Source: Isurus oxyrinchus
Lineage: Eukaryota
Direction: 5' to 3'
Length of the DNA stretch: 64,000 nt
NCBI GenBank assembly: GCA_026770705.1
Contig: JANJGN010000052.1
Span: forward strand, 3,906,001-3,970,000
Shown: positions 15,214 through 53,701 of the stretch, piece after piece
Layout of the letters: every line of letters starts with the position of its first letter
Position numbering within the stretch: position 1 is the stretch's first letter
Notes under the pieces: generated by a model
Databases searched by the model: none
The model's input: only the letters and a program-made list of their open reading frames with translations
What the model was told of the DNA's origin: nothing
Position numbers and translations under genes: made by a program

Positions 15214-15253
15214 ATGATCGGGAAATCTTACTTCCTCCTGTCACTTCTCCAAG
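15214..15253 (+). CDS. Siglec-like gene B: leader coding part, MIGKSYFLLSLLQ
   Basis: ATG at 15214, CAAG|gtaata donor, phase 1. Confidence 0.88.
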
Positions 15254-16500
15254 GTAATATCATCGTCAGCTCAGACAGATTTATGGCTAATAGTCTTTGT
15301 AAAAGATCATTCTTATTGAGCTGTGATTGGGAACCGATTCAGCAGTGAGCCAGTGTACAACCTCACACCAAGTCCCATTCACCCATCACCCCTGTGCTCA
15401 CTGATATACACTGACTCCATGTCTGACAGCAGAATTGGAGGAGAATAGAGATCTCAGAGGGTTGTAAGAACTGGAGGAGGTTACAGAGATAGGGAGGGGA
15501 GAGGGTGGATTGCGGGTAAGAAATCAATGATGAGAATTTGAAATTTGAGTCATTGCTGGACTGGGAGCCAATGTAGGTCAGTGAGTGACAGGGGAGCGAT
15601 CGGCTGAATAGAGAAACAGGGATAAAAACTGGGGAATGAGGTCTATCCTGATGCTAGGACTCGGATAACAATGCCCTGAAATTTTGTGTCATTTGCTGAT
15701 TTTAGTCAGAATTTCCCATGAAGACAACACAGCAGCTCCTAGAATAGACAGGCTGTTCAGTGTCACACTTCCTGTCCATTCTCACCATGCTAGATACTTC
15801 AATAAGGGAGCAAGATAACTGAAAGAGAGAAGGAAGGTAAAGCTGTCTGTGTGTAAAACTGTCAAATATTCTGAGTTATCATGAGTGTCTCTGACCTGCT
15901 GCAGAGTTTAAATTTCACAGAATCTGAGCACTTTGCAGCTCAGAGAGAGACCATTGACTCACTGCCTGAAAGGGCGGTGGAAGCAGATTCAACAGGAACT
16001 TTCAGAAGGGGAACTGGATAAATACTTGAAGGGGACATTTTGCAGGGCTGTGGAGGAGAGAGCAGAGGTTAGAGTGGGACTTATTGGACAGAACTTTCAA
16101 AGGCCCAGCACAGGCTCGATGGGCCAAATGGCTTCCTTCTCTTCCAGATCATTCTGCAATCTGATAAATTAAGCCCCACATCAATAACTCTTAAGGCTCC
16201 TGCTGCAGGGATGGATCTTTGAGAAGGACAGAGAATAAGAGGTTTCTGGTATCATTTTCATATTGTACTGAATCTTGCTGCCAGAATGTTTGGTCACCGC
16301 TGATCACCATGTTGTGTTTTTATAATGATATAAAGGCACCAGCCACTGATACGGAATTGGGTAAATACATTGTGGGTTCAGTTATTTTGAATAGGGACAT
16401 GAGAACAGATGTACAAGGATAGAAAGCTGGGAGACACCTGCAGCCAAACTGTGTGAGCTGTGTTCTGCTCACAGACAAAAGTGAAACTTGGACTGGATGG

Positions 16501-18900
16501 TGTTATCATCCCAGCTGATGTTACTACTGGGCAAGTCAGATCCCAGGGTGGAACTCAGCTTGATAGGTCCTAACTTATATTTTTTATTTAGGAATGTGGA
16601 GTGCGGCTACTAAACAGAGTCACAGGAGTCATCTGATGAACTTCTAACAAAAGAATAAAACATTTATTAAACTAGGAAAGACAAACTATATGACATTACT
16701 CCTTCACCCAGACCTATACATTTACAGTTTCATAAGGATAACACAATTACAATAACTAACTTATACTCTCATGTTCACACTAAGTACACAGTCGATGTAA
16801 AACAGTAGACGACCTGGGGTCAGGGACACCACATTCTGAAACCAAGTGACAGAACCCACTTGGAACAAATGCTCCGGGTCCCTCCTCAACTGACTCTAGA
16901 CGCTTGTTACACCGTGAGGCAACTGGTCTAACGAAACTGCTTCTTTCATATGAGGGTTTCCAATCTCTACTCACCAAGTGCTCTCTTTGGAATCTTCTCC
17001 AACATGACACTTTCACTCAGACACCTTCCACAAGGGTCCACTTTCACTATTTCAAACTCTCCTTCCCATGTTCCTGCCCCCTGGATCGCCACGTGCATTC
17101 AGCCTTCCTTCCACGCCCTGTCTCTCCAATGCTCAGCCGTGTCAATGGAACACCATGGCTTCACTTGGCCGTAGTAATGAGTCACCAACCTGTGGTGTCT
17201 CCTAGGATCTTCTGGCTTCTCACAAGCCTTTTTTGCTTTGGGTCTGTGTCCTTTTGCCCATTCTCTTTTAGCTTGGATCCCTCCTCTGAACCTCAACCTT
17301 AACTTGACTTAACAGGACCTTGTCCAGATTCCTGATCTTCCTTGGACTAGAGGGTCTTCTTGGCCCTTTCTCCTGTTCCACTCGATAGTTTTGGCTTCTT
17401 CTTTACTTTGGGACTGACTATCTGTCCCGCTCCTTTGCTGCTTCTCCTGGCAACTCCTTTCAACAGAACTGAAAGTACTTTTCTGTTTTTCTCTGTCTCT
17501 GTGGGACCTTCCCTCTGGATCACTGTTGCCAGGCAACAGCACAGTTTCTTACACATTGTATTTGTTTTGACTTTCCTTCAACAGTCACCAAACCTCATTA
17601 GATTTCTGGCTTCTATAAAAATGAAACTAAAAGTCAAGTTTCCCCCTTTCTTAACACACAAATACAGAAATCAAACTAAACTTGAACTTAAAGATAGACC
17701 TTATGCCTAACACACACAAATACACATAGAACTTACTTAACCTATCCCCAGTTCCTAAAAATCACATGACACACTTCCCCTCGAGTGATGTCATGCTGCT
17801 GTCCCTGAAAGGCATATTACAGCAGTGTTATCACTTGGCAGGTGATGTGTGCCAGGCAGACCAAGTCCATGAGAGAAAGGTGGTCACACGATCATAATGA
17901 TTTTGCAATTTGTATTTATTATGAGATGTGTGCACTGAATTCAGAAGCAATAATTACTCTAGGAACTTTAGAGATTTGAAAATTAAATTAAAATACTTGC
18001 TCTCAGAAGAAATGATATCATGCATGTACATGACACTACAATTACCATTTTAATAATAATTCTTAAAATTCCGAAATAACCTGACTCCCAGTTACACTCC
18101 CTTTAAGGCAACGGTCCAAAAATAGAGTTTATATTTAAAACAAACTCAGCAAGTTAACACAATATAAAAGCAATACCCTGCACAGAGGAATTCCAAGTGG
18201 CTTTTCCCCAACTTCAGTTCTGTTGGATAGCAGGCTTGTGCACAAATGCTAGTGGTTTCATTAAGACTATATCACACACTCGTGTTAGATCTTACATGGC
18301 ATTCTGACACATAGCCTTTCATTCTCCCTGATAGATATATATTTCTCTCTTTGTAACATGAAAATTCTATTGTTCCAAATGTTTTTGAAACTGTATCTTC
18401 CTCATAACAAATTCTTTTGTGGTGCCCATATTGCCAAGAGCCTTTGAGAAAAATAAGCACATTCCTTAGTCTTGCTTATCTGGCTATTTGTAAACAAACT
18501 AAGATTCCTTTGAAATCCAACAACCCCTTCATTGAAATAAAAATGCAAATTCTCTTCATACCTTCCATGCTAAGCAGCATCCATGTTTACTCAATAGCAT
18601 GTCAAGCACCTAGCTCCTTTTGATCATTTTAAACTTCCAATCTAATTAACTCCAAATGTACTTAAATCACATGCAGACCCATCATGCGTACCCCCATAAA
18701 CCTACTTCACAATATACTATAAAATTTTATGAAAATTATTATACTTTCATCACAATAGGAACCACTGCCTTAGACACTGAGGATCTAGGACAGCTAGGCC
18801 AATTCATGATTCATGATGGTGATAATGGGGGAATTCTGAAGGCTCCTAATCCATTGTCCTAGTTTGTAAATCAGCAGTGAACTCACTTCAATTAGTGTGT
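16501..18900 (-). mobile_element. Two adjacent LTR-like repeats in the leader-V intron of gene B
   Basis: TGTTA/TGTCATG starts at ~16501 and ~17789; the second resembles the reverse complement of the other LTR-like elements; absent from the gene A intron. Confidence 0.5.
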
Positions 18901-19145
18901 CTTGTAGACACTGTGTTGGGTGGAAGACTGGCTTCACTAAGCAGGTTCCTGAGGGCCACGAGCCAATGTAGAATGAACTTGTCCACTCCTGTATCCAGGA
19001 TTCTCTTCAATGTGTTGTGAAACATTGGGGCATTCATTGTGAGTCCAGACTGCAGCCACTGTGCCCCAGTGATGGAGGGGGTGGATTTTGAGTCTAGTGG
19101 ATTGACAAAACATTCAGAGTTAAATATTGATATTTCTCCCCCTAG

Positions 19146-19511
19146 CTGGACTACCACAAGTGTGGAAAGGTGACACTCCAGGAGAGGTGACAGCGCAGGA
19201 AGGTTCGTGTGTACAGATTCCGTGTCATTACAGCTACCCATCATATTTAGTACCGAGATCACCTGTTGGAATCTGGTATATGAGAAGGAATTGGGAAACA
19301 TGGTCTATAGCCTTTCACTCCAAGGATCACAGTCGCGAGTTACCACGGTTCCACCATCGGACCCGGCTTTCTGGAGACCTGAAAGATGGTGACTGTTCCC
19401 TGATTATAAACAACATCAGACGGGAAGATGCAGGATATTATTTATTCAGAACAGATTTTGACAGCAGGAATAGATACAACGACCGTCCTGAAACCCAGCT
19501 TCATGTTTCTG
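19146..19511 (+). CDS. Siglec-like gene B: V-set exon V1
   Basis: ccctag| and TCTG|gtaagt; 366 nt; SCVQIPC, GDCSL, DAGYYLFRTD with the essential Arg. Confidence 0.93.
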
Positions 19512-21120: not shown

Positions 21121-21241
21121 TATAATTTGTTGCCATTCTCCTCAGTATTGACCATCCCCCCAATTCAGCCTCATCTGTAAATATTGGGTTCAGTGGATCC
21201 ACAAACCATCCAGAGATAAATATTGAGATTTCTCTCCCCAG

Positions 21242-21607
21242 CTGAACCCTCGCAAGAGTGGAAAGGTGACAATCCACGAGAGGTGACAGTGCAGGAAGGT
21301 TCGTGTGTACAGATTCCATGTCATTACAGTTATCCATCGTGTCTGGAAAACCAACCGCGAGGTGGAGTCTGGTTTAATAATGAGGAATGGAGAACATCGT
21401 CTATAGCCTTTCACTCCAAGGATCACAGTCACGAGTTACCACGGTTCCACCATTGCACCTGGCTGTCTGGAGACCTGAAAGATGGCGACTGTTCCCTGAT
21501 TATAAACAACATCAGACGGGAAGATGCGGGTCCTTGTTTTTTCAGAATAGAATTTGACAATGGTCCGAGGCATAACTATTACCCTGTAACCCAGCTTCAC
21601 ATTTCTG
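21242..21607 (+). CDS. Siglec-like gene B: second V-set exon V2 (open frame, possibly impaired)
   Basis: ccccag| and TCTG|gtaagt; 366 nt; Arg kept (FFRIE); three extra Cys, one replacing the tyrosine-corner Tyr (DAGPC). Confidence 0.85.
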
Positions 21608-22335
21608 GTAAGTGCTGTGTTATAATTACTCAACAATTCACATCCAACACTCAATGGGAAATAACACAAACTGTGACGTTTACGTATTAACACAAAACAC
21701 AGCTTATTATAACACGCTGTCTGATTCTCAATAACCTGGTGATCGCTTCCAATTCACTCCTAAAGCAACCTCTAATACTCACTTTAATATCAATGATTAA
21801 ATGTATTGACTGTGTCCATCAATGTTATCAGGTTATCCACTCCTATCGATCTCTCTAATCCTGTCTCGAAGTCTGACTTAGCGACAGAAGAAAGATTCAC
21901 ATTTCTGTAGCACCTTTCACCACCTCAGCATGGACCAAATCACTTCACAGCCAATGAGCTGATTCCTGATTTGTAGTTACTATTGTAATGTGGGAAACAC
22001 AGCAACCAATTTGCACACAGCAAGCTCCCACAAATTGCAAAGTAAAAAATGGCCCAGATCGCTGAGGGACTGATGGGTTAGTGCACTCCAAACTCTGGTC
22101 TGCTCCACCACCCTCACCCACTATTATCAGTTCAAGTGTCTCGGAGTGAACGTGTATTAAGCTGAGAGACAGAAACACCAAAGTCTCAAAGCAGGAAATT
22201 CTCTCCTAATCATTGTAACCTCTCAGATCTGATATCATCCTTGTAAAAGTGCTTTTTCTTGTGGGACTGTGATTTCTATTTGAACTGATGCTTCACGTTA
22301 TATTTCTCTAAAAGGATCCATTCTCTGTCTGTTAG

Positions 22336-22632
22336 ATTTCACAGATAAACCCACGATATTCCCTGCTGAAATTATTGCAGGAAAGCCTGTGGATGTAAGC
22401 TGCACCTTCAACACAACGTGCAATGGAACAGCAGCACCTGTCTTAACCTGGGACACTCCCACTGACGTACCTGGATCAGTCTCAAACACTGTAACTCAGC
22501 ATGATGTCACTCTGACCTATACTTCTGTTCTGACCCTGATCCCATCACTCAAACACCACGGACACACTCTCAGCTGCAGAGTGAGATATCCATCTGTTTC
22601 ATCGGAGCGGACCCTCGTACTAACTGTGCAAG
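22336..22632 (+). CDS. Siglec-like gene B: C2-set exon
   Basis: tgttag| and CAAG|gtaagt; 297 nt; almost identical to the gene A C2 exon, Trp intact (LTWDT). Confidence 0.93.
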
Positions 22633-22954
22633 GTAAGTACAGACACCCTTCATTCTACATCAGCACTCCCTCAGCGCTGACCCTCTGACAGTGCAGCCTG
22701 TTCTCAGTATCCACATTCTCAGACCTCTCAAAGTGCTTCACAGTCGATAGAAGTTAACTGATCTTTATTTGATTGTTGCTGAATGAAGAGACAAGCTGTC
22801 TAAACTTTACATCTCACACACATTATTTTCCATGGCAACACCTCCTCCAATCAGAGACCACTTGCTGATTAACCAGCACTCTCTTCCCTTTAAATATAAA
22901 TTGTTGTTCACTTTCTGTTGGTAAACCTGCAATCTGTCTTGTTGAGTCCGGTCC

Positions 22955-23108
22955 TGACATCTGAATATCACAATGAACAGAACAAGTTCCAACAATGAGC
23001 TGTGGTTGGTGATTCCTCACGTTACATCCAGGGACACTGGAGACTATCAGTGTGCTCAGAGAATGAACATGGAGCAGTGGAGGGGTTCATAACCATCACT
23101 GTGGAACG
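22955..23108 (+). pseudogene. Gene B: disrupted Ig3 exon (3' half only)
   Basis: 5' half and acceptor replaced by unrelated sequence; begins TGA; 1-nt deletion (tgtgctcagag vs tgtgtggcagag); donor gttagt. Confidence 0.88.
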
Positions 23109-24221: not shown

Positions 24222-24361
24222 ACAGTGGAGGAGAGATTCTGCACGTGATCCTGATCCTGGGAATACGAGCTGTGATATTCCTTGTGGCTGTGGTTATCAC
24301 TATCACTGGAGTCTGTGTCTGGGAGAGACAAACAGTGAAAGGAAGTCGACAGACTGTTTGA
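24222..24361 (+). CDS. Gene B: terminal exon, activating-type TM with Arg and a short tail (DSGGEILHVILILGIRAVIFLVAVVITITGVCVWERQTVKGSRQTV*)
   Basis: ctctag| acceptor, phase 1, in frame with C2; hydrophobic helix with one Arg; no Tyr motifs; TGA at 24359-24361. This frame is not in the ORF track. Confidence 0.85.
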
Positions 24362-24745
24362 AGCTTTGTACAGCAACAATCTGGTCAGTCAGTGCGGACA
24401 AATAACGTGTGATGTTGTGTTAAGTTGTAATGAAACTGGTCAGTGTCCTGGTTATAATCATCTCCGTATCATCGAGTCATTCCAGCAATGGAGGAGGACA
24501 TTTGGCCCATTGAGTCTATGCTGTCTCTCTGTAAAGCAATCCACTCAGTCCCATCCCCTGCTCTATCCCCGTATCCCTGCAAATTTATTTCCAAATGTCC
24601 GTCCAATTTCCTTTTGAAATTGTTCATCGAATAGGAATGAACAGAAATGTGACGTTGCTAAACTCTGTTCTCTGATTGGAATGTGCTTTCTGAATGCTGC
24701 ACCTTTTTCATGCTGCGATAGATTGTAAGAAGCATTTGGCTTATG

Positions 24746-24751
24746 AATAAA
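24746..24751 (+). terminator. Putative polyadenylation signal for the activating terminal exon
   Basis: AATAAA about 385 nt after the stop codon. Confidence 0.5.
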
Positions 24752-25094
24752 ATTACATTGATTAACTCAAGTGATTAAAATGCTCAGCCTGTTCTGTAGA
24801 TATTTAAAGATTAAAATTCTTGTTTTGCTGCAAAATACTTGGCTCAAAGACATAGCTTCCTGTTGTCACGTTTTCCAATCAGATGAATTCCTCTGTCCAT
24901 CTTTATAATAGAAATTTCCAATGTAAACATGTCACATTGTAACTGCACACTCTTGCCAGTGGGTGGTGTGATACCAAAGCTGTCTTGCTGCAGAGAAACA
25001 GCGAGAAATATTCCTGTTGTGTGCATGAACTTCATGTTAGCATGAGACACAGGCATCAGATGAAATTTTGTGCAATTTGTACAATGTTCTTTAG

Positions 25095-25578
25095 ACAGTG
25101 CAGCACTCCCTCAGATCAGACCCTCCGACAATGCAGCACTCCCTCAGTTCAAACCCTCCGACAGTGCAGCACTCCCTCAGTTCAGACCCTCCGACTGTGC
25201 AGCACTCCCTCAGTTCAAACCCTCCGACAGTGCAGCACTCTCTCAGTTCAGACCCTCCGACAGTGCAGCACTCCCTCAGTTCAAACCCTCAGACAGTGCA
25301 GCACTTTCTCAGTTCAGACCCTCTGACAGTGCAGCACTCCCTCATTTCAGACCCTCCGACAGTGCAGCACTCCCTCAGTTCAGACCCTCCGACAGTGCAG
25401 CACTCCTTCAGTTCAGACCCTCCGACAGTGCAGCACTCCCTCAGTTCAAACCATCCGACAGTGCAGCACTCCCTCAGTTCATACCCTCCGACAGTGCAGC
25501 ACTCCCTCAGTTCAGACCCTCCGACAGTGCAGCTCTCCCTCAGTTCAGACCCTCCGACAGTGCCGCACTACCTCAGTT
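25095..25578. repeat. 33-bp minisatellite, locally homogenised variant (cagttcaga instead of cagtactga)
   Basis: About 14 units. Confidence 0.9.
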
Positions 25579-26924
25579 CTTCTCTGCCGATGCTGCCAGA
25601 CCTGCTGAGTTTTTCCACGTATTTCTGTTTCTGTTTCTGTTTTGAATTTCCAGCATCTGCAGTTTTTTTGCTTTTAGTGCTGGGCAGTTCCTCAGCAAGG
25701 ATTCGGGCCACAGAACATTGCGAGTGCTGTGGGTCTGCGCCACGATTTAGAGAGCTGTGCTTGGCACGCCTATTCTAGTCCCAGTCCAGTGTGGTGGGGA
25801 CAGCCTGGCAGTCCTGGGTTGGTCGTGCCCAGCATGGTGTGAGTGACGTGGTCAGTCCCTCACACACGTCGGTCCTGGGGGTGGGTGGCTTGATACTAGG
25901 CCGCAGGTGGCACAATCCCAGTCAGGGGAGGCATCTGCAGCCTGTCAGTGGGGAGCAGGTAATATAGAGAGTAGGGGTGGGGGTGGGAATCGAGGGGGGC
26001 CGGTGGTCTCTGTAAGTCACAGTACAATGGGCCTCTAGTTGGAGAGAGGTCAGGTCTACATGGGGCATTGGGATGTCAACATCAGACAGTCTAGGGAGGA
26101 GGACTGGGATGTCAACCCCGAACACAATAAGATCAAGGATTAGAGAGGAAGGGAGGAGACTGATTGGAAGGCGGGGAATGTGCACATTATGCTCCTCCAG
26201 CACGATGGGAGGGACTGTGACGGTTACAGGAGTGGGGGGGTGAAGTGTGAGGGGATAGACGCTTACCTGGTGGTATTGCCTCAGCCTCACCCTTTTTCAA
26301 GCTGATCCAATGTCGCAGTTGAAGAATAAGCTACAAAACAAATTGGCAGGGGAGGTCTCCCAGGGCCTGTGGGAGACATCACCCACTGCACTCGTAGGCC
26401 TGTTTGAAGGGGCACCCGAACAATTCCGGCTTTTCCAAATGATGAGGAAGACACAGCTGCACCCCGAGTCCCCTACTGGGGATCCAGACGGTTGCAATAG
26501 CGCTGCGAGGGACTCATGGGCTCCACAGTGACTCCCTAATTAGCGACTGGAAGGTTTATGTTCATTTATCTTTATTATCCGTTCATATTGAGCAATGGAG
26601 CTCCTGATTTGTCACCTTTCTGTACCTCGTCCAATGCTTCTGTTATCAGGACTTCCACATCGATGTGAAAGAGCCATGATGATAGCAGACAGTCGCACAA
26701 TGGGAATGGCACTAGGCCAGTGATCCAGAGGCCCAGGTAAATACTTTGAAGGCACGGGTTCAAATCCCACCACGGCAGCTGGAGGAATTTCGATTCGATT
26801 AATCAATAAATTTAATTGATTGATACATTTTTTTCTTATTCATTTCAGGGATGTTGGTGTCACTGGCTAGGCCAGTATTTGTTGCCCATCCCCAATTGCC
26901 TTTGAGAACATCTGGATATCTGAG

Positions 26925-32084: not shown

Positions 32085-32700
32085 GGATGGCGCATTTCTA
32101 TAGCGCCTTTCCCCTCCTCGGGATGGCCCAAAGTGTTCCACAGCTGAAGGAAGGACTTTTTCTGAAGTGAGCTCACCGCTGTAATGTAGGAAACGCAGCA
32201 GGCAATTCACGCACAGCAAGATCCCACAAACAGAAATGTGATAATGGCCCCGATTTTCAGTTTTTAACCAATGTCAGTTGAGGGATAAATGTTTGCCCCA
32301 GGAAAGCAGACATAACTGCATCCCATCCACCCCCCACCACCCCCTCCACACATACCCCCAACTCCTGACGCACTTCATTTAAATTGTGGCCATGGAATCC
32401 TCTACATCCATCTGAGAGGGCAGATGTTGTCTCAGTTTAACATCTCATCTGAAAGACAGCGCATTCAACAGTGCAGCACCCCCTCAGTACTGACCCTCCG
32501 ACTGTGCAGCACTCCCTCAGTACTGACCGTCTGACAATGCAGCACCCCCTCAGTACTGACCCTCCGACTGTGCAGTCCCCCGCCGGTACTGACCTTCTGA
32601 CAATGCAGCACTCCAAGACTGACTGTCTGACAATGCAGCACCCCCTCAGTACTGACCCTCCGACTCTCCTGCCCCCCCGCTGGTACTGACCCTCCGACAA
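32085..32700 (-). mobile_element. SacSINE1/DeuSINE-like SINE with an expanded 33-bp internal repeat
   Basis: L2-type tail (gcatttctatagcgcctttc), gcacagcaagatcccacaaacag core, tandem 33-mers. Confidence 0.7.
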
Positions 32701-39370: not shown

Positions 39371-39403
<33 letters not shown>

Positions 39404-39803
39404 GTTTGAGCCTCACGCCCGGTGGTTGGTTCCTGTCCCAGCTGAGGACTGGTGCCATGTTGTACATCCTGTAAATCCCGCCAGTCTCTCCCAGCACTTT
39501 CCATGCCTGGCGCTATTTCCATGGTGCGCTTCAAATCGATGTCGGCTTCTGCGAGTAAACGGCTCTGAATGGCGTTGGGGTGAACGACACAAACCAATCG
39601 GCCCCGCAACATGTCATTGAGTGTGTCTCCGAGGTCCCAGTGCTCAGTCACCTGCTTCCACTTCACTGTATAGGTTGCGATGGACTCTCCCTGGGCCCTT
39701 ACTCTGGAGTTAAACTTAAACCTTTTCATTATTACCCACGGCTTCAGCTGAAAATACATCTTCATGAGGTCGACTAATTGGTGAAAAGATTTAGAATTGG
39801 GTG
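38690..39803 (-). mobile_element. Degenerate Gypsy/Ty3 gag-protease fragment
   Basis: RFKFNSRVRAQGESIA..LNDMLRGRLVC (gag); CSRCGGH and CHHCHKKG zinc knuckles; VNGQPLVM/DMGAS and GEGPSLLGRDW (aspartic protease); frameshifted. Confidence 0.88.
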
Positions 39804-40092
39804 TAATACACGTCACTGTCTTCAGCTCTGAGACTGTCAATCCTCACCAAACAATTCTTCCCTTCCAAGTCGCCGATTATTTTAGCACGTCCCACGAATG
39901 TGGCCATCGCATAATTGGGATCTTTGGTGTATGTGATGGTATATTTCCATCTATACCAATATTTATACCAAGCTCCGTGCAGTGCTGTGTAAGAGTGGGA
40001 AGGCAGGTCAAAGCTACACGGAATAACCACACAAGAGCTGCTGATAGCCCTCCGAGGTAGCGCCTTCATAGACCATCCCTCTGACGTCACTC
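39804..40092 (-). pseudogene. Gene D: divergent MAG/Siglec-like V-set exon truncated at DSDVYY
   Basis: tttcag| acceptor; W..SSCVVIPCSF..HGAWY..FVGRAKIIGDLEGKNC..DSDVYY, then gag sequence and a stop at 39791-39793. Confidence 0.85.
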
Positions 40093-40124
40093 CTGAAAGG
40101 CAACAAGGGAGGGGACTGAACATC

Positions 40125-40600
40125 AAAAAGCAGAATATTACTTCAATGGAGAGAGTCTACAGAATGCGGTACAGAGGGATCTGGGTGTCCTTGTACATGA
40201 ATCACAGAAAGTCAGCATTCAGGAACACCACGGAATGAGGAAGGCAAGTGGAATGTTGGCCTTTATTGCAAAGGGGTGGAGTATAAAAGGAGGGAAGTCT
40301 TGCTACAACTGTACAGGGCGTTGGTGAGATTGTATCAGGAGCAGTGTGTACAGTTCTGGTCTCCTTACTTAGGGAGGGATAGACTCTGCATTGGAGGCAG
40401 TTCAGAGGAGGTTCACTGGGCTGATTCCTGGGATGAAGGGGGTTTGTCTTATGAGGAAATGTTGAGCAGGTTGGGCCCTGTATCCATTGGAGTTTAGAAG
40501 AATGAGAGGTGATCTTATTGAAACATATAAGATTCTGAGGTGGTGGGGGGTTTGACAGGGTGGATGCTGAGGGGATGTTACCCCTTGTGGGGGAATCCTG
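40125..40600 (+). mobile_element. CR1-clade LINE fragment in the gene D intron
   Basis: EYKRREVLLQLYRALVR..CVQFWSPY. Confidence 0.85.
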
Positions 40601-40912
40601 TGAAGCAATAAGGATGTTTTACTGCATTAAAGGTGCTATATAAATGCACTGTCATTCCTATTGAAACAAGCTCTCTGATGCACAAACAGAAAATGCTGGA
40701 AAAACTCAGCAGGTCTGACAGCATCTGTGGAGAGAGAAACAGAGTTGGTGTTTCGAGTCCGTATGAGGCTTTTTCTTTTGCTATATTCTCTGACTCGCTA
40801 TTCACTCAATCTCTGTGTGATCACTAACCCTGTTCTCTAAAATTAAATGTTCACTTCCTCACTCCAGGAAAGAATCCAATTCCCTGAGTTCCGATCAGTA
40901 ATGAATTTGTAC

Positions 40913-40958
40913 CTTGCAGCAAGCTGATGAAGATCAATATCAGACCGACCTCTCCCAT
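40913..40958 (-). pseudogene. Gene D: leader coding part, MGEVGLILIFISLLQ(G)
   Basis: ATG at 40958, CAAG|gtacaa donor, phase 1, in frame with the V exon. Confidence 0.8.
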
Positions 40959-41224: not shown

Positions 41225-43335
41225 CACAATCTCTATCACACTCTTCTGCTCTATCTCTCTCTCTCACACACACACATTCTCTCTCTAACACTCACAATCT
41301 CTCTCTATCACACTCTTCTGCTCTATCTCTCTCTCTCACACACAGACACGTTCTCTCTCTAACACTCACAATCTCTCTCTATCACACTCTTCTGCTCTAT
41401 CTCTCTCTCTCTCTCACACACACATTCTCGCTCTTATACTCACAAAATTTTTCTCTATCACACTCTTCTGCTCTATCTCTCTCTCTCTCTCACACACACA
41501 TTCTCTCTCTAACACTCACAATCTCTCTCTATCGCACTCTTCTGCTCTATCTCTCTCTCTCTCACACACACACATTCTCTCTCTAACAATCACAATCTCT
41601 CTCTATCACACTCTTCTGCTCTATCTCTCTCACACACACACACAATCTCTCTCTAACACTCACAATCTCTCTCTCTATCACACTCTTCTGCTCTATCTCT
41701 CTCACACACACACATTCTCTCTCTAACACTCACAATCTCTCTCTCTATCACACTCTTCTGCTCTATCTCTCTATCACACACACACCTTCTCTCTCTAACA
41801 CTCACAATCTCTCTCTATCACACTCTTCTGCTCTATCTCTCTCTCTCACACACACACATTCTCTCTCTAACACTCACAATCTCTCTCTATCACACTCTTC
41901 TGCTCTATCTCTCTCTCTCACACACACACACATTCTCTCTCTAACACTCACAATCTCTCTCTATCACACTCTTCTGCTCTATCTCTCTCTCTCACACACA
42001 CACATTCTCTCTCTAACACTCACAATCTCTCTCTATCACACTCTTCTGCTCTATCTCTCTCTCTCACACACACACACATTCTCTCTCTAACACTCACAAT
42101 CTCTCTCTATCACACTCTTCTGCTCTATCTCTCTCTCTCACACACAGACACGTTCTCTCTCTAACACTCACAATCTCTCTCTATCACACTCTTCTGCTCT
42201 ATCTCTCTCACTCTCACACACATTCTCTCTGTCAGCACTCACAATCTCTCTCTATCGCACTCTTCTGCTCTATCTCTCTCTCTCTCTCACACACACATTC
42301 TCGCTCTTATACTCACAAAATTTTTCTCTATCACACTCTTCTGCTCTATCTCTCTCTCTCTCTCACACACACATTCTCTCTCTAACACTCACAATCTCTC
42401 TCTATCGCACTCTTCTGCTCTATCTCTCTCTCTCTCTCTCACACACACATTCTCTCTCTAACAATCACAATCTCTCTCTATCACACTCTTCTGCTCTATC
42501 TCTCTCTCTCACACACACATTCTCTCTCTAACACTCACAATCTCTCTCTCTATCACACTCTTCTGCTCTATCTCTCTCACACACACACACATTCTCTCTC
42601 TAACACTCACAATCTCTCTCTCTATCACACTCTTCTGCTCTATCTCTCTCACACACACACACATTCTCTCTCTAACACTCACAATCTCTCTCTATCGCAC
42701 TCTTCTGCTCTATCTCTCTCACACACACACACATTCTCTCTCTCACACTCACAATCTCTCTCTCTATCACACTCTTCTGCTCTATCTCTCTCTCACACAC
42801 ACACACATTCTCTCTCTAACACTCACAATCTCTCTCTATCGCACTCTTCTGCTCTATCTCTCTCACACACACACACATTCTCTCTCTCACACTCACAATC
42901 TCTCTCTCTATCACACTCTTCTGCTCTATCTCTCTCTCACACACACACACATTCTCTCTCTAACACTCACAATCTCTCTCTATCGCACTCTTCTGCTCTA
43001 TCTCTCTCTCTATCACACACACACCTTCTCTCTCTAACACTCACAATCTCTCTCTATCACACTCTTCTGCTCTATCTCTCTCTCTCTCACACACACATTC
43101 TCTCTCTAACACTCACAATCTCTCTCTATCACACTCTTCTGCTCTATCTCTCTCTCACACACACACATTCTCTCTCTAACACTCACAATCTCTCTCTATC
43201 ACACTCTTCTGCTCTATCTCTCTCTCTCACACACACACACATTCTCTCTCTAAAACTCACAATCTCTCTCTATCACACTCTTCTGCTCTATCTCTCTCTC
43301 TCACACACACACACATTCTCTCTCTCTCAAACATT
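41225..43335. repeat. ~60-bp CT/CA-rich satellite (ctctaacactcacaatctctctctatcacactcttctgctctatctctc..cacacatt)n
   Basis: More than 30 units; followed by a related CT/CA array and N-gaps. Confidence 0.92.
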
Positions 43336-44394
43336 TACCATCTCTCTCTATCTTTCTCTTCTGCTGTCTCCTTCTTTCGCACTCTCATGCACTCTCTCCC
43401 TCACACACACAGAATCTCCCTCACACACACACCCTCCCTCACACACACACGCACTCTCTCTGATACGCACAATCTCTCCCTCACACACACACACACTCTC
43501 TCTCACACACAGAATCTCTCTCACACACACACACTCTCCCTCACACACACATCCTCCCTCACACACGCACACACTCTCTCTGATACGCACAATCTCTCCC
43601 TCACACACACATACTCTCCCTCACACACACACACTCTCTCCCTCACACACAGAATCTCTCTCACACACACACACTCTCCCTCACACACACATCCTCCCTC
43701 ACACACACACACACTCTCTCTGATACGCACAATCTCTCCCTCACACACACAGAATCTCTCTCACACACGCACACTCTCCCTCANNNNNNNNNNNNNNNNN
43801 NNNNNNNNNNNNNNNNNNNNNNNNNNNNNNNNNNNNNNNNNNNNNNNNNNNNNNNNNNNNNNNNNNNNNNNNNNNNNNNNNNNNNNNNNNNNNNNNNNNN
43901 NNNNNNNNNNNNNNNNNNNNNNNNNNNNNNNNNNNNNNNNNNNNNNNNNNNNNNNNNNNNNNNNNNNNNNNNNNNNNNNNNNNNNNNNNNNNNNNNNNNN
44001 NNNNNNNNNNNNNNNNNNNNNNNNNNNNNNNNNNNNNNNNNNNNNNNNNNNNNNNNNNNNNNNNNNNNNNNNNNNNNNNNNNNNNNNNNNNNNNNNACAC
44101 ACTCTCTCCCNNNNNNNNNNNNNNNNNNNNNNNNNNNNNNNNNNNNNNNNNNNNNNNNNNNNNNNNNNNNNNNNNNNNNNNNNNNNNNNNNNNNNNNNNN
44201 NNNNNNNNNNNNNNNNNNNNNNNNNNNNNNNNNNNNNNNNGTACACACTCTTTCTAATTCTTTTTCTCTCTCACAGACTCTCTCTGTCTCTCTCGCTCTC
44301 TCTCTCTCTCACACACACTCTCTCTAATACGGAAGGTTGTGGTTTTAAGACGTGCTCATGATTTCTGCTCAAAACCCAGGCAGATTCTCCCCAG

Positions 44395-44790
44395 TGAGGG
44401 AGTACTGAGGGTGTGCTGCACTGTCAGAGGGTCAGTACTGAGGGAGTGCTGCACTGTCAGAGGGTCAGTACTGAGGTAGTGCTGCGCTGTCAGAGGGTCA
44501 GTAGTGAGGGAGTGCTGCACTGTCAGAGGGTCAGTACTGAGGGAGTGCTGCACTGTCAGAGGGTCAGTACTGAGGGAGTGCTGCACTGTCAGAGGGTCAG
44601 TACTGAGGTAGTGCTGCACTGTCAGAGGGTCAGTACTGAGGGAGTGCTGCACTGTCAGAGGGTCAGTAGTGAGGGAGTGCTGCACTGTCAGAGGGTCAGT
44701 ACTGAGGGAGTGCTGCACTGTCAGAGGGTCAGTACTGAGGGAGTGCTGCACTGTCAGAGGGTCAGTACTGAGGGAGTGCTGCACTGTCAG
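44395..44790. repeat. 33-bp minisatellite, very homogeneous
   Basis: About 12 units. Confidence 0.9.
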
Positions 44791-44902
44791 AACTGTCGTA
44801 ATTCAGATGATGTTTGAAATTAGCAACATGCCTCGTGTAAAATTCTATATCATCAGCTCAATATAAATAGATTAGTCCTGTACGTTTCACTTCACTGCAA
44901 AT

Positions 44903-46748
44903 TGTTCATGGTTTCATTTCCTTGTTAACCAGGCTCATGTGATGACTATTTTTAAATAATGTTTGTTATTTGGAACAAGGGGCCATGCCTGAACAGATAA
45001 CTGTCGGATCAAGCAGCTGGGATTTTTCTTGAACCTGGCTTCATTCAGATGTTTGCTGCTGGACATGAGATCATTAATGTGTGAATGTAGAATCGGAGTC
45101 ACCTCAGTGAACAGCAGCATTGGTTGAACAGCCTGATCTGCAATAAGAACTGCTGAACACAATGTCCGTTCAGAACAGCTCGGTCCCCGATCAGAGAAAC
45201 AGCCTCAGACAGAACCAACTGACGCTGGAATCCATACAATTCATCAACGTGTTGGGAGTTAGTTTGATGTCGGAGTTGGAGTGTTCCTGGGAAGGAGGGA
45301 ACCCGTCAGGATGAACAGCTCGATGTACGACAAGGAAAGGATGAGCTAAGAGGGGTTGGTCACGGACAGACGGAGCGTGTGAAGACTCAACAAGCTAATG
45401 GCAGGTGAAGAGCTGGAAAGGTGTCTTTTCAACACAAGGTTTAGACACAGAACTCGATGTTTGATCAGGTATTTCAAACCAGAGAAACTCTTTACAGGGT
45501 GAATGGACCTTGTCAATAATCCTTCCAGCCAACCTCGCCTGGAGATTAGTCCAATATTAGACACTAAACCGAGACCCCCGTCTGCCCTCTCGGGCGGGTG
45601 TGAAAGATCCCACAGCCACTATTTGGAGGAAGAGCAGGGGGGAGATCTCACACGCAGACACACACACACACACACACACATTTTCTCTTGTTCATTCTTT
45701 TAAACACACACACTCCCTCTCAAATACACACACCCTCTCTCGCACACTCCTTCTCTCAAACACATACACCCTCTCTCTCAAACACACACACACACACGCT
45801 CTCACGCACACGCTCTCTCACATACACGCTCTCTCTTTCACACACACACTATCTAACACCCACAGATTCTCTCTCTTTCTTTCTCTCTCACACATAAGCT
45901 CTCTCTCTAACACAGACATTCCCTTTCTCTCACACACACTCTCTCTCTCACACAATTCAGCTACCTCACTCTCTCATGCGTACACACTCTACCTCTCTTT
46001 TGCTCTCTCACACATTTTCTCTTTCTCTCTATCCTTCTCTCTCGCACACATACGCACTGTCACTCTCTCACACACACATTGTCTCTCTTTCTCACACACG
46101 CACTCACTCTCTCTCTCTCTCCAAGACAGCAGGTTGGGGTTTTCAAACCGTCTCAAGGTTTCAGCTCAAAACACAGATGGACTCTCCCCAGTGAGGGAGT
46201 GCTGAGGGAGTGCTGCACTGTTGGAGGGTCAATATTGAGGGAGTGCTGCACTGTCAGAGGGTGAGTACTGAGGGAGTGCTGCACTGTCAGGAGGTCAGTA
46301 CTGAGGGAAACCCTGCTCTATCAAAGGGTCAGTACTGAGGCAGTGCTGAACTGTCAGAGGGTCAGTACTTAGGGAGTGCTGCACTGTCAGAGTGTCAGTA
46401 CTGAGGGAGTGCTGCACTGTTGGAGGGTTAGCACTGAGGGAGTGCTGCACTTCCAGAGGGTCAATACTGAAGGAGTGCTGCACTCTCAAAGCGTCAATGC
46501 TGAGGGAGTGCTGCACTGTCAGAGGGTGGACACTGAGGGAATGCTGCTCTGTCAGACCTGCCATATTTCAGATGATGTTTAAAATTAGCAACATGCCTCA
46601 TGTATAATTATATATCATCAACTCAAATTAAATAGATTATTCCTGTACATTTCACTTTACTGTAAATTGTTTGCAGTTTCATCTCCTTAGAAGCCAGGTT
46701 TGTGTGATCACTATTTTTAAATAACGTTAATAATAAAGATGCGACAAT
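44903..46748 (+). repeat. Segmental duplication arm; inverted copy at 61488-64000
   Basis: Identical ORF-track peptides on opposite strands (44935..45162 minus equals 63741..63968 plus). Confidence 0.92.
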
Positions 46749-46762
46749 CCACATGCACACAT

Positions 46763-46798
<36 letters not shown>

Positions 46799-47501
46799 AT
46801 GTGTAGGCACATACATGCACATTTACACACAGTCATACACATGCAAAAACCTACACAGAAACATACACACACTCAACTCACACACACACACTCACACGTG
46901 CACACACATACACATACACATGTACACACATTCATTTATGCACAGAAATATACACAAAGACACACGCACATTTGCGCAAACACATACACACATGCACACA
47001 CAGACACATGCATGCATACTCACACAAACATACTCACATATGTAGAAACACAAACACATACACATAAACACGCGTGAGGTCCCTCTTCTCTCTCAGGGCT
47101 GCACTGGAGTCTCGGTGTCAGCTCCGATTCTGTGTTGAAGGAAGGTAAACTCCAGATCAGCAAGACCCTGAATTGGATGAGCAACCTCCTGAACAGAGAA
47201 TTGTAGATTTACCCCTCAGTGCTCCATCAATCAAATACAATTCATTCCCGTAAATCCCTTGGCAAAATCCTGAGGATGTGAAAGTTTCTTTCATTCTAGG
47301 TGAACAGCACATCTACTGGTGGGAGAATGTAACTCCAGTTTGACTGTTTACATAGGCAGTGCCCATTATAAATTTGACAGTGGAAGTTATATGGAGGGAA
47401 GGTATCTGGAAATGTATACAGACATCAGATACAGAGAGATGATGCATGGAGTCTTGCTGTGCACTATGCTTGCTCACATTAAAATCTTTATTTATTTTTA
47501 G

Positions 47502-47783
47502 ACGCACCACGGAATCTCTTAATTACTTCTCTGGATATGATTAACGTTTCATCGATCAATATAATTGAGGGGAATTCTGCAGTGATAATCTGCTCTGTCG
47601 AGAGCTTCCCAGCTTCTAACCTGACGTGGCAACATCTTAATGTCCAAATGAACAGATCAAGTTCCAACAATGAGCTGTGGTTGGTGATTCCTCACGTTAC
47701 ATCCAGGGACACTGGAGACTATCAGTGTGTGGCAGAGAATGAACATGGAGCAGTGGAGGGATTCATAACCATCACTGTGGAAT
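47502..47783 (+). CDS. Tail C: Ig3 repeat exon 1
   Basis: ttttag| and GAAT|gtgagt; 282 nt. Confidence 0.9.
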
Positions 47784-48537: not shown

Positions 48538-48818
48538 ACGCACCCAGAATCTCTCAATTAATTCTCTTGATATGATTAACGCTTCATCGATCAATATAAT
48601 TGAGGGGAATTCTGCAGTGATAATCTGCTCTGTCGAGAGCTTCCCAGCTTCTAACCTGACGTGGCGACATCTTAATGTCCCAGTGAACAGAACAAGTTCC
48701 AACAATGAGCTGTGGTTGGTGATTCCTCACGTTACATCCAGGGACACTGGAGACTATCAGTGTGTGGCAGAGAATGAACATGGAGCAGTGGAGGGGTTCA
48801 TAACCATCACTGTGGAAC
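48538..48818 (+). pseudogene. Tail C: Ig3 repeat exon 2, frameshifted
   Basis: 281 nt; acgcacccagaat vs atgcaccacagaat (1-nt deletion); reads APRISQLILLI* if spliced normally. Confidence 0.8.
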
Positions 48819-48844
48819 GTGAGTTACTGCAAACTCCAACATCA

Positions 48845-48885
<41 letters not shown>

Positions 48886-49623: not shown

Positions 49624-49905
49624 ACACACCACGGAATCTCTTAATTACTTCTCTGGATATGATTAACGTTTCATCGATCAATATAATTGAGGGGAATTCT
49701 GCAGTGATAATCTGCTCTGTCGAGAGCTTCCCAGCTTCTAACCTGACGTGGCAACATCTTAATGTCCAAATGAACAGAACAAGTTCCAACAATGAGCTGT
49801 GGTTGGTGATTCCTCACGTTACATCCAGGGACACTGGAGACTATCAGTGTGTGGCAGAGAATGAACATGGAGCAGTGGAGGGATTCATAACCATCACTGT
49901 GGAAT
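49624..49905 (+). CDS. Tail C: Ig3 repeat exon 3
   Basis: ttttag| and |gtgagt; 282 nt. Confidence 0.9.
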
Positions 49906-50396: not shown

Positions 50397-50678
50397 ATGC
50401 TCCACAGAATCTCTTATTTACTTCTCTTGATATGATTAACGCTTCATCGATCAATATAATTGAGGGGAATTCTACAGTGATAATCTGCTCTGTCGAGAGC
50501 TTCCCAGCTTCTAACCTGACGTGGCGACATCTTAATGTCCCAATGAACAGAACAAGTTCCAACAATGAGCTGTGGTTGGTGATTCCTCACGTTACATCCA
50601 GGGACACTGGAGACTATCAGTGTGTGGCAGAGAATGAACATGGAGCAGTGGAGGGATTCATAACCATCACTGTGGAAT
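50397..50678 (+). CDS. Tail C: Ig3 repeat exon 4
   Basis: tcttag| and |gtgagt; 282 nt. Confidence 0.9.
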
Positions 50679-51494
50679 GTGAGTGTGGAGATACATTTGT
50701 TTGTTTGTTGTCTCCGTGGTCTCCGTGGAGCCATTGGGATCGTGTTGTTTTTAATCCAGTTTTCTTCAATCCTCGCTCAGTCCACGTTATCCACACATCC
50801 AATTTTTCCTCTCCCTTTCTGTTTTTGCTCTCAGTTTCTCCTTCAATGGTTGTGAGGACAAGGCTGTCAGGTCTTCGTTTCCAATCTCCATACTTGACGA
50901 CCTTTCTCTCTCTAACTGTCCTGAACAACCCTTTTAATCGCTGAACTTCTCATTCTTTAATTGAAAAATATTATATATAAACGTTACATGGATTACTTTG
51001 AAATGCAACACTTCTATTCATAAATTGCTTAGAAATTACTAAACATTCAACAGACAATGAAGCAATAGCGAAGTGAGCTCACTGTTGAAATGTAGGAAAC
51101 ACAGGTACTGATTTGTGCACAGCAAGATCCCGCATACATCGTGTGATAATGACCTGATAGTCGACTATTTTAGTGAGGTTGGTTGTTACATGTGTAGAGA
51201 CTACATACCCTTTAGGGAGGTAAGCATGTCTCGATGTGGATGTGACTCCAGTCTCAGACACCAGCATGGTTAACTCTTACCTGCCCTCTGAACTGGTCTC
51301 CCAGTTTGGGACAAACCAGTGGTTCAGGAACAAGACTCCCCACCACCATCTCAAGGGGAAACTAGTGATGGACAATAAATGTCAGCATTGCCCGAGAATG
51401 AGTATTTAAACATTGAGTGAGTGTATCGCTTCTCGAGATACATCGGAGCATCATTGTAAACCTGTAGTGCAGTAATTAATGGCTGTTTTTACAG

Positions 51495-51591
51495 GTAGAG
51501 ACTCCAGTAAATGGACAGTAGGATTGTTCACGGCTGGGATCATGTTGAGTGTTTTCCTGGCTGGAATCTTCATCTTCATCTGTGTGAGAAA
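51495..51591 (+). CDS. Tail C: neutral TM exon (RDSSKWTVGLFTAGIMLSVFLAGIFIFICVR)
   Basis: ttacag| and GAAA|gtaagt; 97 nt, phase 1-2. Confidence 0.88.
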
Positions 51592-52263
51592 GTAAGTCTG
51601 AAGATTTAACTTGATTTTAATATAAACATTTGCTTCAATGTTCTTTCCTTAAGTCGGTGATTGTTTCCCTTGGGATCAGCACCAGGTCCCTCTCTGTAAG
51701 TGATCCCTGTGTCCACTCTGATCCGGAGAGAACCTTTCATTGTCCTGTATCCAGGTAAACGATCACGAGACTCAGAGATTCCTCACTCTGCACGATTACT
51801 CCTGGATAAATATTTGCTTCAATGTTCTTTCCTTAAGTCGGTGATTGTTTCCCTTGTGTTAAGCGCCAGATGCCTCTCCGTAACTGGTCTCTTTATCCGT
51901 TATGATCCAGAGAGTGTTTTTCATTGCCCGTTATCCAGATGAATAATAATCAGTTGCTGTGATCTGGAAGGTGCTGCCTGAAAGGGCGGTGGAAGCAGAT
52001 TCAATAGGAACTTTCAAAAGGGGAATTGGATAAATACTTGAAGGGGGAAAATTTGAAGGGCTACGGGGGGAAGAGCAGGGATGGAGGGGTCAGACAAAAT
52101 TGAATCACATGACACACTTCCATTATAGTGATATCACGCTGATATCCCTTATTGCAACTGGAGACAGTCCAGTCGTTTGTGTAAGGTTACAGTGGGCTCT
52201 GTGTCTGTGCTGCACTGACTCTCTGCTATATGATAACCACAGTGTGATATTGTGTTATTGCAG

Positions 52264-52345
52264 GAGAAAGACAACGATGGAGGAGAGAGTTTCAGGGACC
52301 AGTGACGTTGCATTGAGCCCCAGTCCACTCTCTGTGAAGCACCAG
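52264..52345 (+). CDS. Tail C: juxtamembrane cytoplasmic exon
   Basis: ttgcag| and CAG|gtacag; 82 nt, phase 2-0; (K)RKTTMEERVSGTSDVALSPSPLSVKHQ. Confidence 0.88.
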
Positions 52346-52559
52346 GTACAGGAGCTGTTTACACTAACTCCAAAGCTTCAATATCAGTGTGTAGACAACA
52401 CGTGTCCCAGATTCCCAACCCAGTTACCCACAGATATCTACCTGTGGAGTCAGCAATGGCTCAGTAGGTAATATTGACTTTCGGTCCCTTCCCCCTCTCT
52501 CCCTCCATCACTCGCTCTTTGTCCAGAGACCTGAACACAATAATCATAAGGCACCTGAT

Positions 52560-53090
52560 GTCACTACTGAGGGAGTGCTGCACTGTCGGAGGGTAGGTAC
52601 TGAGGGAGTGCTGCACTGTCGGAGTGTCAGTACTGAGGCAGTGCTGCACTGTCGGAGGGTCATTACTGAGGGAGTGCTGAACTGTCGGAGGGTAGGTACT
52701 GAGGGAGTGCTGCACTGTCGGAGTGTCAGTACTGAGGCAGTGCTGCACTGTCGGAGGGTCAGTACTGAGGGAGTGCTGCACTGTCGGAGGGTCAGTACTG
52801 AGGGAGTGCTGCACTGTCGGAGGGTAGGTACTGAGGGAGTGCTGCACTTTCGGAGGGTCACTACTGAGGGAGTGCTGCACTGTCGGAGGGTAGGTACTGA
52901 GGGAGTGTTGCACTGTCGGAGTGTCAGTACTGAGGCAGTGCTGCACTGTCGGAGGGTCAGTAGTGAGGGAGTGCTGCACTGTCGGAGGGTCAGTACTGAG
53001 GGAGCGCTGCACTGTTGGAGTGTCAGTACTGAGGGAGTGCTGCACTGTGCGAGGGTCAGTACTGAGGGGGTGCTGCACTGTCGAATAGTC
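52560..53090. repeat. 33-bp minisatellite within a SINE remnant
   Basis: About 16 units. Confidence 0.9.
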
Positions 53091-53452
53091 AATATTCAAG
53101 TGGTGCTGCCTTCTCGAAGAGGCAGTTGTGAGGGAGTGCCGCACTGTCAGAAGCCAGCACTGAGAGTACATTGTAGTGTTCAAGGTGCTGTCTTTCAGAA
53201 CAGTTGTATAATGCTGACCATGTTTACCCTCTCAGGTGGTCGTATAAGATCCCATGGCCACATTTCCAACACTATAGCAGTGACACCCTTCAACAAAAAT
53301 TTCTTCATTTGCGTGAGGTTCTTTGGATGTCTTTGAAAAAAAGGGTTAAACGCTCTGAGCCACGACTGACACTAGCGAGGCTGCACAATAATTTAACCCT
53401 ATCAGTGCCAGTAAATGATGTGAGGATGTCTTCTGTTTCCATTTCTCTGTAG

Positions 53453-53701
53453 GGTAAACAGAACGTGCTGATTACTGAGCCCCGGAACACAACCAGAGAC
53501 ACAACTAGTGAGGGGGAGACCCCAGCTCCCCGGGATCTCTCTGAAGGTCCAGTGGGAGGCGATGTTGGACATGGGAACCCCGACAATCCCGTCGAGCTTC
53601 TCTACGCCAACATCAACTTTTCAAAGCTGCCCAGCGGTGACAGGACTGTGCACAGGAGCGAGGACACGGAATACGCACAGATCAGGTTCCAGAAAAACTG
53701 A
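53453..53701 (+). CDS. Tail C: terminal exon with ITIM (LLYANI) and ITSM/ITIM-like motif (TEYAQI)
   Basis: ctgtag| acceptor, phase 0; motif pair typical of inhibitory CD33-related Siglecs. Confidence 0.92.
   Translation, partial: GKQNVLITEPRNTTRDTTSEGETPAPRDLSEGPVGGDVGHGNPDNPVELLYANINFSKLPSGDRTVHRSEDTEYAQIRFQKN

Follow-up and report, generated by a model that had tools for sequence, protein, structure and literature searches.

A predicted activating-type Siglec-like gene upstream of a putatively beheaded inhibitory tail in a receptor cluster of the lamniform shark Isurus oxyrinchus

Introduction

Pairs of an activating and an inhibitory receptor are believed to evolve as pathogens turn inhibitory receptors to their own use, and in mammals the two partners are separate genes that gene conversion keeps alike. 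Could one gene make both, by joining a single ligand-binding head to either of two signalling ends? A 64,000-nucleotide stretch of the Isurus oxyrinchus genome (GenBank assembly GCA_026770705.1, contig JANJGN010000052.1, positions 3,906,001 to 3,970,000 of the forward strand; here called the window) raises this question. The window is part of a cluster of Siglec-like receptor genes and contains gene A, gene B, a 3' gene part that we call tail C, and fragments. A sequence-only reading of it had proposed that the head of gene B (leader, V, and C2 exons) can be spliced either to a nearby terminal exon, which encodes a transmembrane (TM) segment with an arginine (Arg-TM), or to tail C, about 23 kilobases (kb) further on, which encodes immunoglobulin (Ig) domains of the Ig_3 type (Ig3), a neutral TM segment, an immunoreceptor tyrosine-based inhibitory motif (ITIM), and an immunoreceptor tyrosine-based switch motif (ITSM). 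The explanation that we favor, with about even confidence, is a different one. From the exon structure, gene B would be a self-contained activating gene and tail C the beheaded remnant of a different inhibitory gene.

The locus would be a paired-receptor cluster, a kind of arrangement that is already known. In the human pairs SIGLEC5/SIGLEC14 and SIGLEC11/SIGLEC16, an activating member with a basic TM residue and a short tail stands beside inhibitory members with ITIMs, and the extracellular exons are kept alike through gene conversion (PMC4042635, PMC5701461). A full-text literature search returned no report of an activating/inhibitory switch within one Siglec gene, and no paper on Arg-TM Siglec-like genes or Siglec pairs in sharks or elasmobranchs.

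Results

The window was mapped from open reading frames (ORFs), self-BLAST, and tblastn with the window's own exons (Table 1). Exons were searched singly, and the frame of gene B was checked through exon lengths and phases. A full HMMER scan with the second V exon of gene B, together with word-indexed searches, retrieved 307 related proteins, cited below by P numbers. Those from Cetorhinus, Carcharodon, Scyliorhinus, and Chiloscyllium are automatic gene models, and gene order in Carcharodon and Cetorhinus was taken from accession order alone. Pfam recognized V-set/Ig_CD22, C2-set_2, and Ig_3 domains in the window, and the exons of head B and tail C match annotated shark Siglec-like proteins with E values of 1e-40 to 1e-110, far beyond chance. 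There are hundreds of shark and ray relatives, which carry the NCBI names Siglec, CD33-like, MAG-like, or CD22-like. The nearest ones are lamniform, with identities on single exons of up to 98.9% in Cetorhinus and 93-98% in Carcharodon; no I. oxyrinchus protein was among the relatives retrieved.

Gene B reads as a complete, self-contained gene for an activating-type Siglec-like receptor, since splice sites, phases, and open frames, checked exon by exon, are in order and it has its own terminal exon, 3' untranslated region (3'UTR), and AATAAA. Its leader is of a type that also opens many annotated shark Siglec-like proteins. The leader and the C2 donor at 22632 are as the sequence-only reading had described them, but where it had one V exon the head contains two, V1 and V2. 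Both are intact and are 72% alike in protein. Pfam placed both above cutoff as V-set and Ig_CD22 (for V1, 1.1e-13 and 2.3e-9), which is the N-terminal domain type of Siglecs and CD22, and C2-set domains come after it (C2-set_2 at 22336-22632, Ig_3/I-set for the Ig3 exons). In the family alignment, the strand F arginine that binds the sialic acid carboxylate in Siglecs (Y-x-F-R) appears as YYLFR in V1, CFFR in V2, and YYFR in the V of gene A, and is absent from the V' fragment described below (YYTQ at its break). The Siglec cysteine pattern, SCVxIPC in strands A'/B and DCSL in strand E with no cysteine in strand F, is found in V1, V2, and the gene A V; V2 has extra cysteines in HHCTW and GPCFF.

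The proximal terminal exon with an arginine in its TM, a short tail, and AATAAA was confirmed. Its acceptor at 24222 (ag/AC) is pyrimidine rich, and the exon reads DSGGE followed by a 29-residue hydrophobic stretch with one arginine (..ILGIRAVIF..). After the TM sequence, ILHVILILGIRAVIFLVAVVITITGVCVW, come a tyrosine-free tail of 12 residues, ERQTVKGSRQTV, and a stop, and the 3'UTR reaches AATAAA at 24746-24751. Activating paired receptors of the Siglec-14/-16 type are marked by a basic residue inside the TM helix and by a short tail that lacks tyrosine motifs, and they associate with an adaptor (DAP12 or FcR gamma type) that has an immunoreceptor tyrosine-based activation motif. Gene B shares the first two marks and is a predicted activating receptor; going by the analogy with other receptors built like it, its arginine would recruit such a separate adaptor. 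About 270 nucleotides (nt) past the stop, the stretch from 24630 to 24771 resembles, at 77% identity, the 3'UTR that follows the ITIM exon in tail C and in a minus-strand tail, and of these three homologous copies only that of gene B contains AATAAA.

The short receptor expected from head B and the Arg-TM exon has annotated counterparts of the same build, leader-V1-V2-C2-Arg-TM, in Carcharodon carcharias. These are P0262 and P0266 (XP_041037141.1, 406 amino acids, named "sialic acid-binding Ig-like lectin 12 isoform X1"). P0266 is 97% alike in C2, 93.5% in the TM exon, and 87% in V2, it has the same C2>DSGGEIL junction and the same ..ILGIR..QTV ending, and its 406 residues compare with 402 codons for the summed exon lengths of gene B. 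It differs in V1, for which it is the best match but only 75% alike, and it is an automatic model from another species. The gene B TM exon is also 93.5% alike to the last 46 residues of at least nine Carcharodon proteins. Carcharodon has at least 12 distinct Arg-TM proteins, and there are more in Scyliorhinus and Chiloscyllium; in some of them Ig3 domains precede the Arg-TM exon. In gene B, a dead Ig3 remnant sits between the C2 and Arg-TM exons.

Two further features of gene B were noticed. An upstream ATG at 15192, 22 nt 5' of the leader ATG and out of frame with it, is open to the donor at 15253, and the Carcharodon model P0017 begins at the equivalent ATG. V2 carries R>C and R>W changes in the otherwise invariant HRTRLSG (giving HHCTWLSG) and a Y>C change in GPYFFR (giving GPCFFR). 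The two arginine changes resemble CpG transitions, and V2 gains two cysteines; the substitutions are either decay or a change of function.

The proposal of two signalling ends amounts to one transcription unit with alternative last exons. The promoter of gene B would lead to the Arg-TM end and so to an activating receptor on a short stalk. Or this end and its poly(A) site would be skipped and the same V1-V2-C2 head spliced 23 kb on to Ig3a, Ig3c, and Ig3d, the TM exon, and the ITIM exon of tail C, for an inhibitory receptor on a long stalk. The immunoglobulin mu secreted/membrane switch, in which splicing or the poly(A) site chooses the ending, has the one promoter and one binding part with which such a unit would work. 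The same holds for horse CEACAM1 paralogues, whose alternative 3' ends alter receptor signalling (PMC5856374). The junctions of both known systems were shown by complementary DNA, whereas the window case is known from genomic sequence only. All junctions of the proposed unit are in frame: the acceptors, read directly, show that the phase-1 C2 donor at 22632 fits both 24222 and 47502, as had been stated. Because every Ig exon in the family has phase 1-1, this agreement is not evidence for splicing. A product of head B and tail C would resemble ordinary long members such as P0309 (residues 1-790), P0152, and P0163. On the other hand, gene B has a terminal exon, 3'UTR, and AATAAA of its own, and none of the 18 Arg-TM proteins among the 307 relatives shares a head (97% or more over at least 100 residues) with an ITIM-tailed protein. 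The same two-ended gene was not seen in related species among the 307 proteins.

The pair partner of gene B would most likely be a separate gene such as its head-to-head neighbor, gene A, judging from how the two sequences resemble each other. Their C2 exons are 99.0% identical in nucleotides, with three differences, all of which change amino acids (gene B has Pro, Trp, and Asp at these sites), and the last 114 nt of the intron before C2 agree at 98.2%. Over the 32 nt past the C2 donor the agreement is down to 84%; the gene A V is 87.7% identical to V2 of gene B, the leader region 91%, and the intron that follows V 95%. We read the C2 block (21608-22640 in gene B, 1550-2225 in gene A) as the tract of a recent conversion that took in no more than part of the extracellular region. 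Such domain-restricted homogenization is known for paired opposing receptors and for SIGLEC11/16 (PMC3210942, PMC5701461). The window pair is like the human paired Siglecs in that the C2 block of A and B is 99% identical and V 88%. It differs from them in that the shark locus is not orthologous to the mammalian CD33-related genes and the head of gene B has two V domains. That gene A is the inhibitory partner is something we infer from a gene which the window shows only to its first Ig3.

Tail C contains all the exons attributed to it, namely four Ig3 exons, a neutral TM, and ITIM and ITSM, but Ig3b is frameshifted by a one-base deletion. Its inclusion would shift the frame and lead to a stop after 12 codons, which leaves three of the four Ig3 exons usable. 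The membrane-proximal ITIM and the distal ITSM-like motif are those of a CD33-related inhibitory tail, and the ITIM exon is 90% alike to Cetorhinus P0155 and Carcharodon P0196. After the stop, no canonical AATAAA occurs before 54499, about 800 nt on.

By its structure, tail C is a 5'-truncated Ig3 array and appears to have been beheaded. All four of its Ig3 exons have an upstream intron of the internal (inter-Ig3) type, unlike the first Ig3 of gene A. Upstream of Ig3a this intron occupies 46750-47501, and its homology ends at 46750, precisely at the end of an inverted-repeat arm. Ig3a is thus not the original first unit of the array. Gene A has the layout C2, a 33-nt minisatellite, first Ig3, and a CA-rich intron. 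Of these, the minisatellite (46189-46557) and the intron are present in tail C, while the first Ig3 and anything C2-like are absent. The internal introns, the cut at 46750, the missing first Ig3, the frameshift in Ig3b, the lack of a plus-strand head within 23 kb, and the truncated head fragment on the minus strand together point to beheading. For alternative last exons, the same array means that Ig3b must be skipped and that the joined tail is truncated.

Headless tails are also annotated in two other lamniform sharks, where they are separate genes with the tail C exon set and no V or C2: Cetorhinus maximus XP_078389617.1 (P0155, Ig3 x5-TM-ITIM/ITSM) and Carcharodon XP_041037176.1 (P0158, Ig3 x4-TM-ITIM/ITSM). 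Unlike Ig3b of tail C, their Ig3 units are all in frame. Their separate status speaks against tail C as a second end of gene B. Further headless models are P0280, P0282, and P0290 in Cetorhinus and P0278 in Carcharodon. These models, and P0158 with its short non-Ig first exon spliced to Ig3 x4-TM-ITIM, would fit transcription of tail C alone, from an unrecognized first exon or cryptic promoter, into a headless and probably nonfunctional transcript. We regard this as quite improbable. No homologue of the P0158 first exon was found in the window, including the sequence upstream of Ig3a, the headless models may rest on protein homology alone, and a protein that lacks a signal peptide would not get to the membrane.

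Between gene B and tail C, tblastn found no plus-strand V or C2 homologue from 24.7 to 47.5 kb and blastn no leader-like DNA in the same interval. Both searches agree with the earlier statement that no plus-strand leader, V, or C2 lies there, though a minus-strand head fragment does. That tail C lacks a plus-strand head of its own is also what a shared head would lead one to expect. The sequence from 25 to 44 kb holds reverse-transcriptase and retroelement-like fragments, a long satellite, and the minus-strand fragment, a leader' and V' that are 92% and 89% alike to the head of Carcharodon P0205 by tblastn. V' is cut after ..DVYY, where unrelated sequence with retroelement-like ORFs begins. 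We take these ORFs to be retroelement-like from recognized motifs (gag-like, zinc knuckle, protease-like); Pfam gave no match at an E value of 0.01 or better for the ORFs adjoining V' (38.0-39.8 kb). The rest of V', and the C2' and Ig' of the broken head, were not found anywhere in the window. A transcript running from gene B to tail C would have to cross all of this 23-kb interval, with the reverse-transcriptase/retroelement-like fragments, 2.5 kb of satellite, and the piece of an antisense gene that it contains, which does not favor alternative last exons.

Tail C might also have an ordinary head that the assembly hides, either within runs of N or because 46.75-61.5 kb is misplaced or misoriented, with the head, for example, beyond 64 kb. 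The N runs at 43.8-44.2, 61.3-61.5, and 62.5-62.6 kb are close to both arms of the inverted repeat, and inverted repeats of 2.5 kb can mislead assemblers, as they can also mediate real inversions. The pair of N runs at 43.8-44.2 kb, however, lies inside one satellite and hardly looks like room for 7 kb of exons. The satellite motif is present both in the 14-base island that separates the two (43784-44096, 44111-44240) and in the 85 bases that follow, so sequence continuity across them is plausible, and since this DNA is noncoding, no reading frame is at issue. N runs have odd lengths (313, 130, 163, and 133), and their flanks, where read, are simple repeats of the CA/CT kind. This has the look of simple sequence that was masked or not read, unlike fixed-size scaffold joins. 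Self-BLAST aligned the arms in three blocks: 44903-45649 with 64000-63254 (98.5%), 45695-46488 with 62478-61682 (92.9%), and 46263-46748 with 61974-61488 (86.9%). Because they differ by 1.5-13%, the arms are real diverged copies and no assembly duplicate of one read. Moreover, P0155, likewise a model of an Ig3 array without a head, comes from a high-contiguity Cetorhinus assembly, where its contig is 13.7 Mb long. We therefore give a head hidden by the assembly a very low probability.

The arms bracket tail C and 7.6 kb of repeat-rich DNA, and if they recombined, tail C would be turned onto the opposite strand. Within the satellite, 41230-43365 consists of 29 copies of a 74-nt unit at 92% identity, with no evident function.

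The Cetorhinus locus XP_078389732-740 bears on the two-ended arrangement. Its accessions and isoform numbers (X1-X6, named Siglec-13/Siglec-12) run on, as they would for one locus, and its order is that of the window: a B-like V1-V2-C2 head, a leader'-V' head, and a TM-ITIM (..FQKN) tail. X1 (P0283) and X2 have the form leader'-V'-C2'-Ig'-TM-ITIM. In the X3 model (P0004), a B-like leader-V1-V2 is joined directly to a TM-ITIM tail further downstream, the one that X1 also uses (100% identity). X6 (P0273) is V1-V2-C2 with a retained intron, reading KYRHPSFYIS as after 22632 in the window. B-like heads thus occur with an Arg-TM ending in the Carcharodon models and with an ITIM ending in those of Cetorhinus, which together with X3 counts in favor of alternative last exons. 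The locus differs from the window in that V' is intact, lies on the same strand, and owns the tail, whereas the window V' is inverted and broken. X3 skips C2, and no Arg-TM isoform of this locus was among the retrieved proteins, so a two-ended gene is not seen there either. An ordinary long form is also present in Cetorhinus (P0309, multi-V-C2-Ig3-Ig3-TM-ITIM with ..FQKN), with the V' gene directly after it. A wider possibility is that clusters of shark Siglec-like genes consist of heads that each have a proximal and a distal signalling cassette behind them. Taking both sides together, we consider alternative last exons of gene B unlikely.

Other parts of the cluster were seen in the rest of the window. 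Fragments of a second-type cytoplasmic exon (..STGRGHSAQAERVGSS..) lie in mirror image at 6195-6272 (minus strand) and 14671-14763 (plus strand), in each case a short way 5' of the leader of gene A or gene B, so the duplicated unit took in the tail of the preceding gene; the Carcharodon model P0196 begins inside such a fragment. A headless "double tail" on the minus strand consists of an ITIM exon, a cytoplasmic exon, and a second ITIM exon, an order also present in the models P0196 and P0278 (Carcharodon) and P0280 and P0282 (Cetorhinus). One 33-nt minisatellite occurs at nine places, usually at fixed introns of the Siglec unit, C2>Ig3 and the intron 5' of the ITIM exon, and is a likely substrate for unequal exchange within the cluster.

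Table 1. Positions of the features of the 64,000-nt window
Feature	Position	Strand	Remarks
Gene B leader exon	15214-15253	+	MIGKSYFLLSLLQ plus 1 base; ATG 15214, phase-1 donor after 15253
Gene B V1	19146-19511	+	366 nt, phase 1-1, good splice sites; V-set with YYLFR
Gene B V2	21242-21607	+	366 nt, phase 1-1, good splice sites; V-set with CFFR
Gene B C2	22336-22632	+	297 nt, donor AAG/GTAAGT, phase 1; Pfam C2-set_2 6.9e-9
Dead Ig3 remnant in gene B	22958-23106	+	3' half only, one-base deletion; by alignment and tblastn in two frames
Gene B terminal coding exon	24222-24361	+	Arg-TM, 12-residue tail, stop 24359-24361
Tail C Ig3a	47502-47783	+	282 nt, phase 1-1, intact; Pfam Ig_3 8.8e-13
Tail C Ig3b	48538-48818	+	281 nt, one-base deletion
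Tail C Ig3c	49624-49905	+	282 nt, phase 1-1, intact; 2 nt different from Ig3a
Tail C Ig3d	50397-50678	+	282 nt, phase 1-1, intact; 98.9% to last Ig3 of Cetorhinus P0155
Tail C TM exon	51495-51591	+	neutral TM, phase-2 donor; 97% to Carcharodon P0252/P0278
Tail C first cytoplasmic exon	52264-52345	+	86% protein copy at 12176-12259 (-)
Tail C last coding exon	53453-53701	+	ITIM LLYANI, ITSM-like TEYAQI, stop
Broken head of another Siglec type	39803-40958	-	leader' 40958-40913 (MGEVGLILIFISLLQ), V' 40092-39803
CT/CA-rich satellite	41230-44325		74-nt and 20-nt periods (Tandem Repeats Finder); holds both N runs of 43.8-44.2 kb
All N runs in the window	10104-10283, 43784-44096, 44111-44240, 61324-61486, 62479-62611		
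Inverted repeat, left arm	44265-46748		two copies of the 33-nt minisatellite; inner end abuts the truncated Ig3 array
Inverted repeat, right arm	61488-64000		runs off the window
Gene A	598-5763	-	head to head with gene B; leaves the window after its first Ig3
Gene A exons	leader ~5763-5724, single V 2591-2226, C2 1854-1558, first Ig3 879-598	-	
Minus-strand double tail	ITIM exons 10486-10731, 13437-13682; cytoplasmic exon 12176-12259	-	ITIM changed to LLY(T/A)NP
33-nt minisatellite	1012-1438, 10870-11161, 13821-14403, 25089-25580, 32381-32699, 44396-44791, 46193-46556, 52559-53164, 61680-61978		

Discussion

We set out the favored explanation, a self-contained gene B and a beheaded tail C, as follows. 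Tail C would be the 3' part of an inhibitory gene, which could have been a long form like gene A or else the V' gene. Its head would have been lost in a rearrangement to which the inverted repeat, the inverted V' fragment, and the cut in the array at 46.75 kb all go back. Tail C would then be no regular second end of gene B; occasional read-through splicing would be possible but would not be the reason for the presence of tail C.

Some observations weigh against this explanation. Apart from Ig3b, the exons of tail C are intact, with good splice sites and an unbroken ITIM and ITSM. Its Ig3 exons are 96-99% alike (2-10 of 279 nt differ) and the adjoining intron about 89%, which fits continued use and selection, or conversion from paralogues in use. 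The ratio of nonsynonymous to synonymous substitutions among the Ig3 copies, 0.5-1.2, comes from only 2-10 differences per pair, too few to inform. Sharks mutate slowly, so the intactness of the exons says little either way. The Cetorhinus X3 junction described above counts on the same side. The layout of a head, a proximal end, and a headless Ig3-array tail may also recur in Cetorhinus, where P0275, P0155, and P0280 have neighboring accessions (XP_078389616, 617, and 619).

If the head of gene B were spliced to tail C after all, one gene would give opposite signals through identical binding domains, a simpler answer to the problem of co-evolution than gene conversion. Alternative last exons would then be, besides gene pairs, a route to paired receptors, here by capture of the tail of a beheaded neighbor. 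On the explanation that we favor, the main interest of the locus is that it shows clearly how clusters shed and orphan parts of genes. The same logic of paired receptors as in mammals is seen in a lamniform shark, in which an Arg-TM gene of predicted activating type and Siglec-like build lies beside a relative with what appears to be a freshly converted C2 block. This places such a receptor design, by descent or by convergence, in the cartilaginous fishes.

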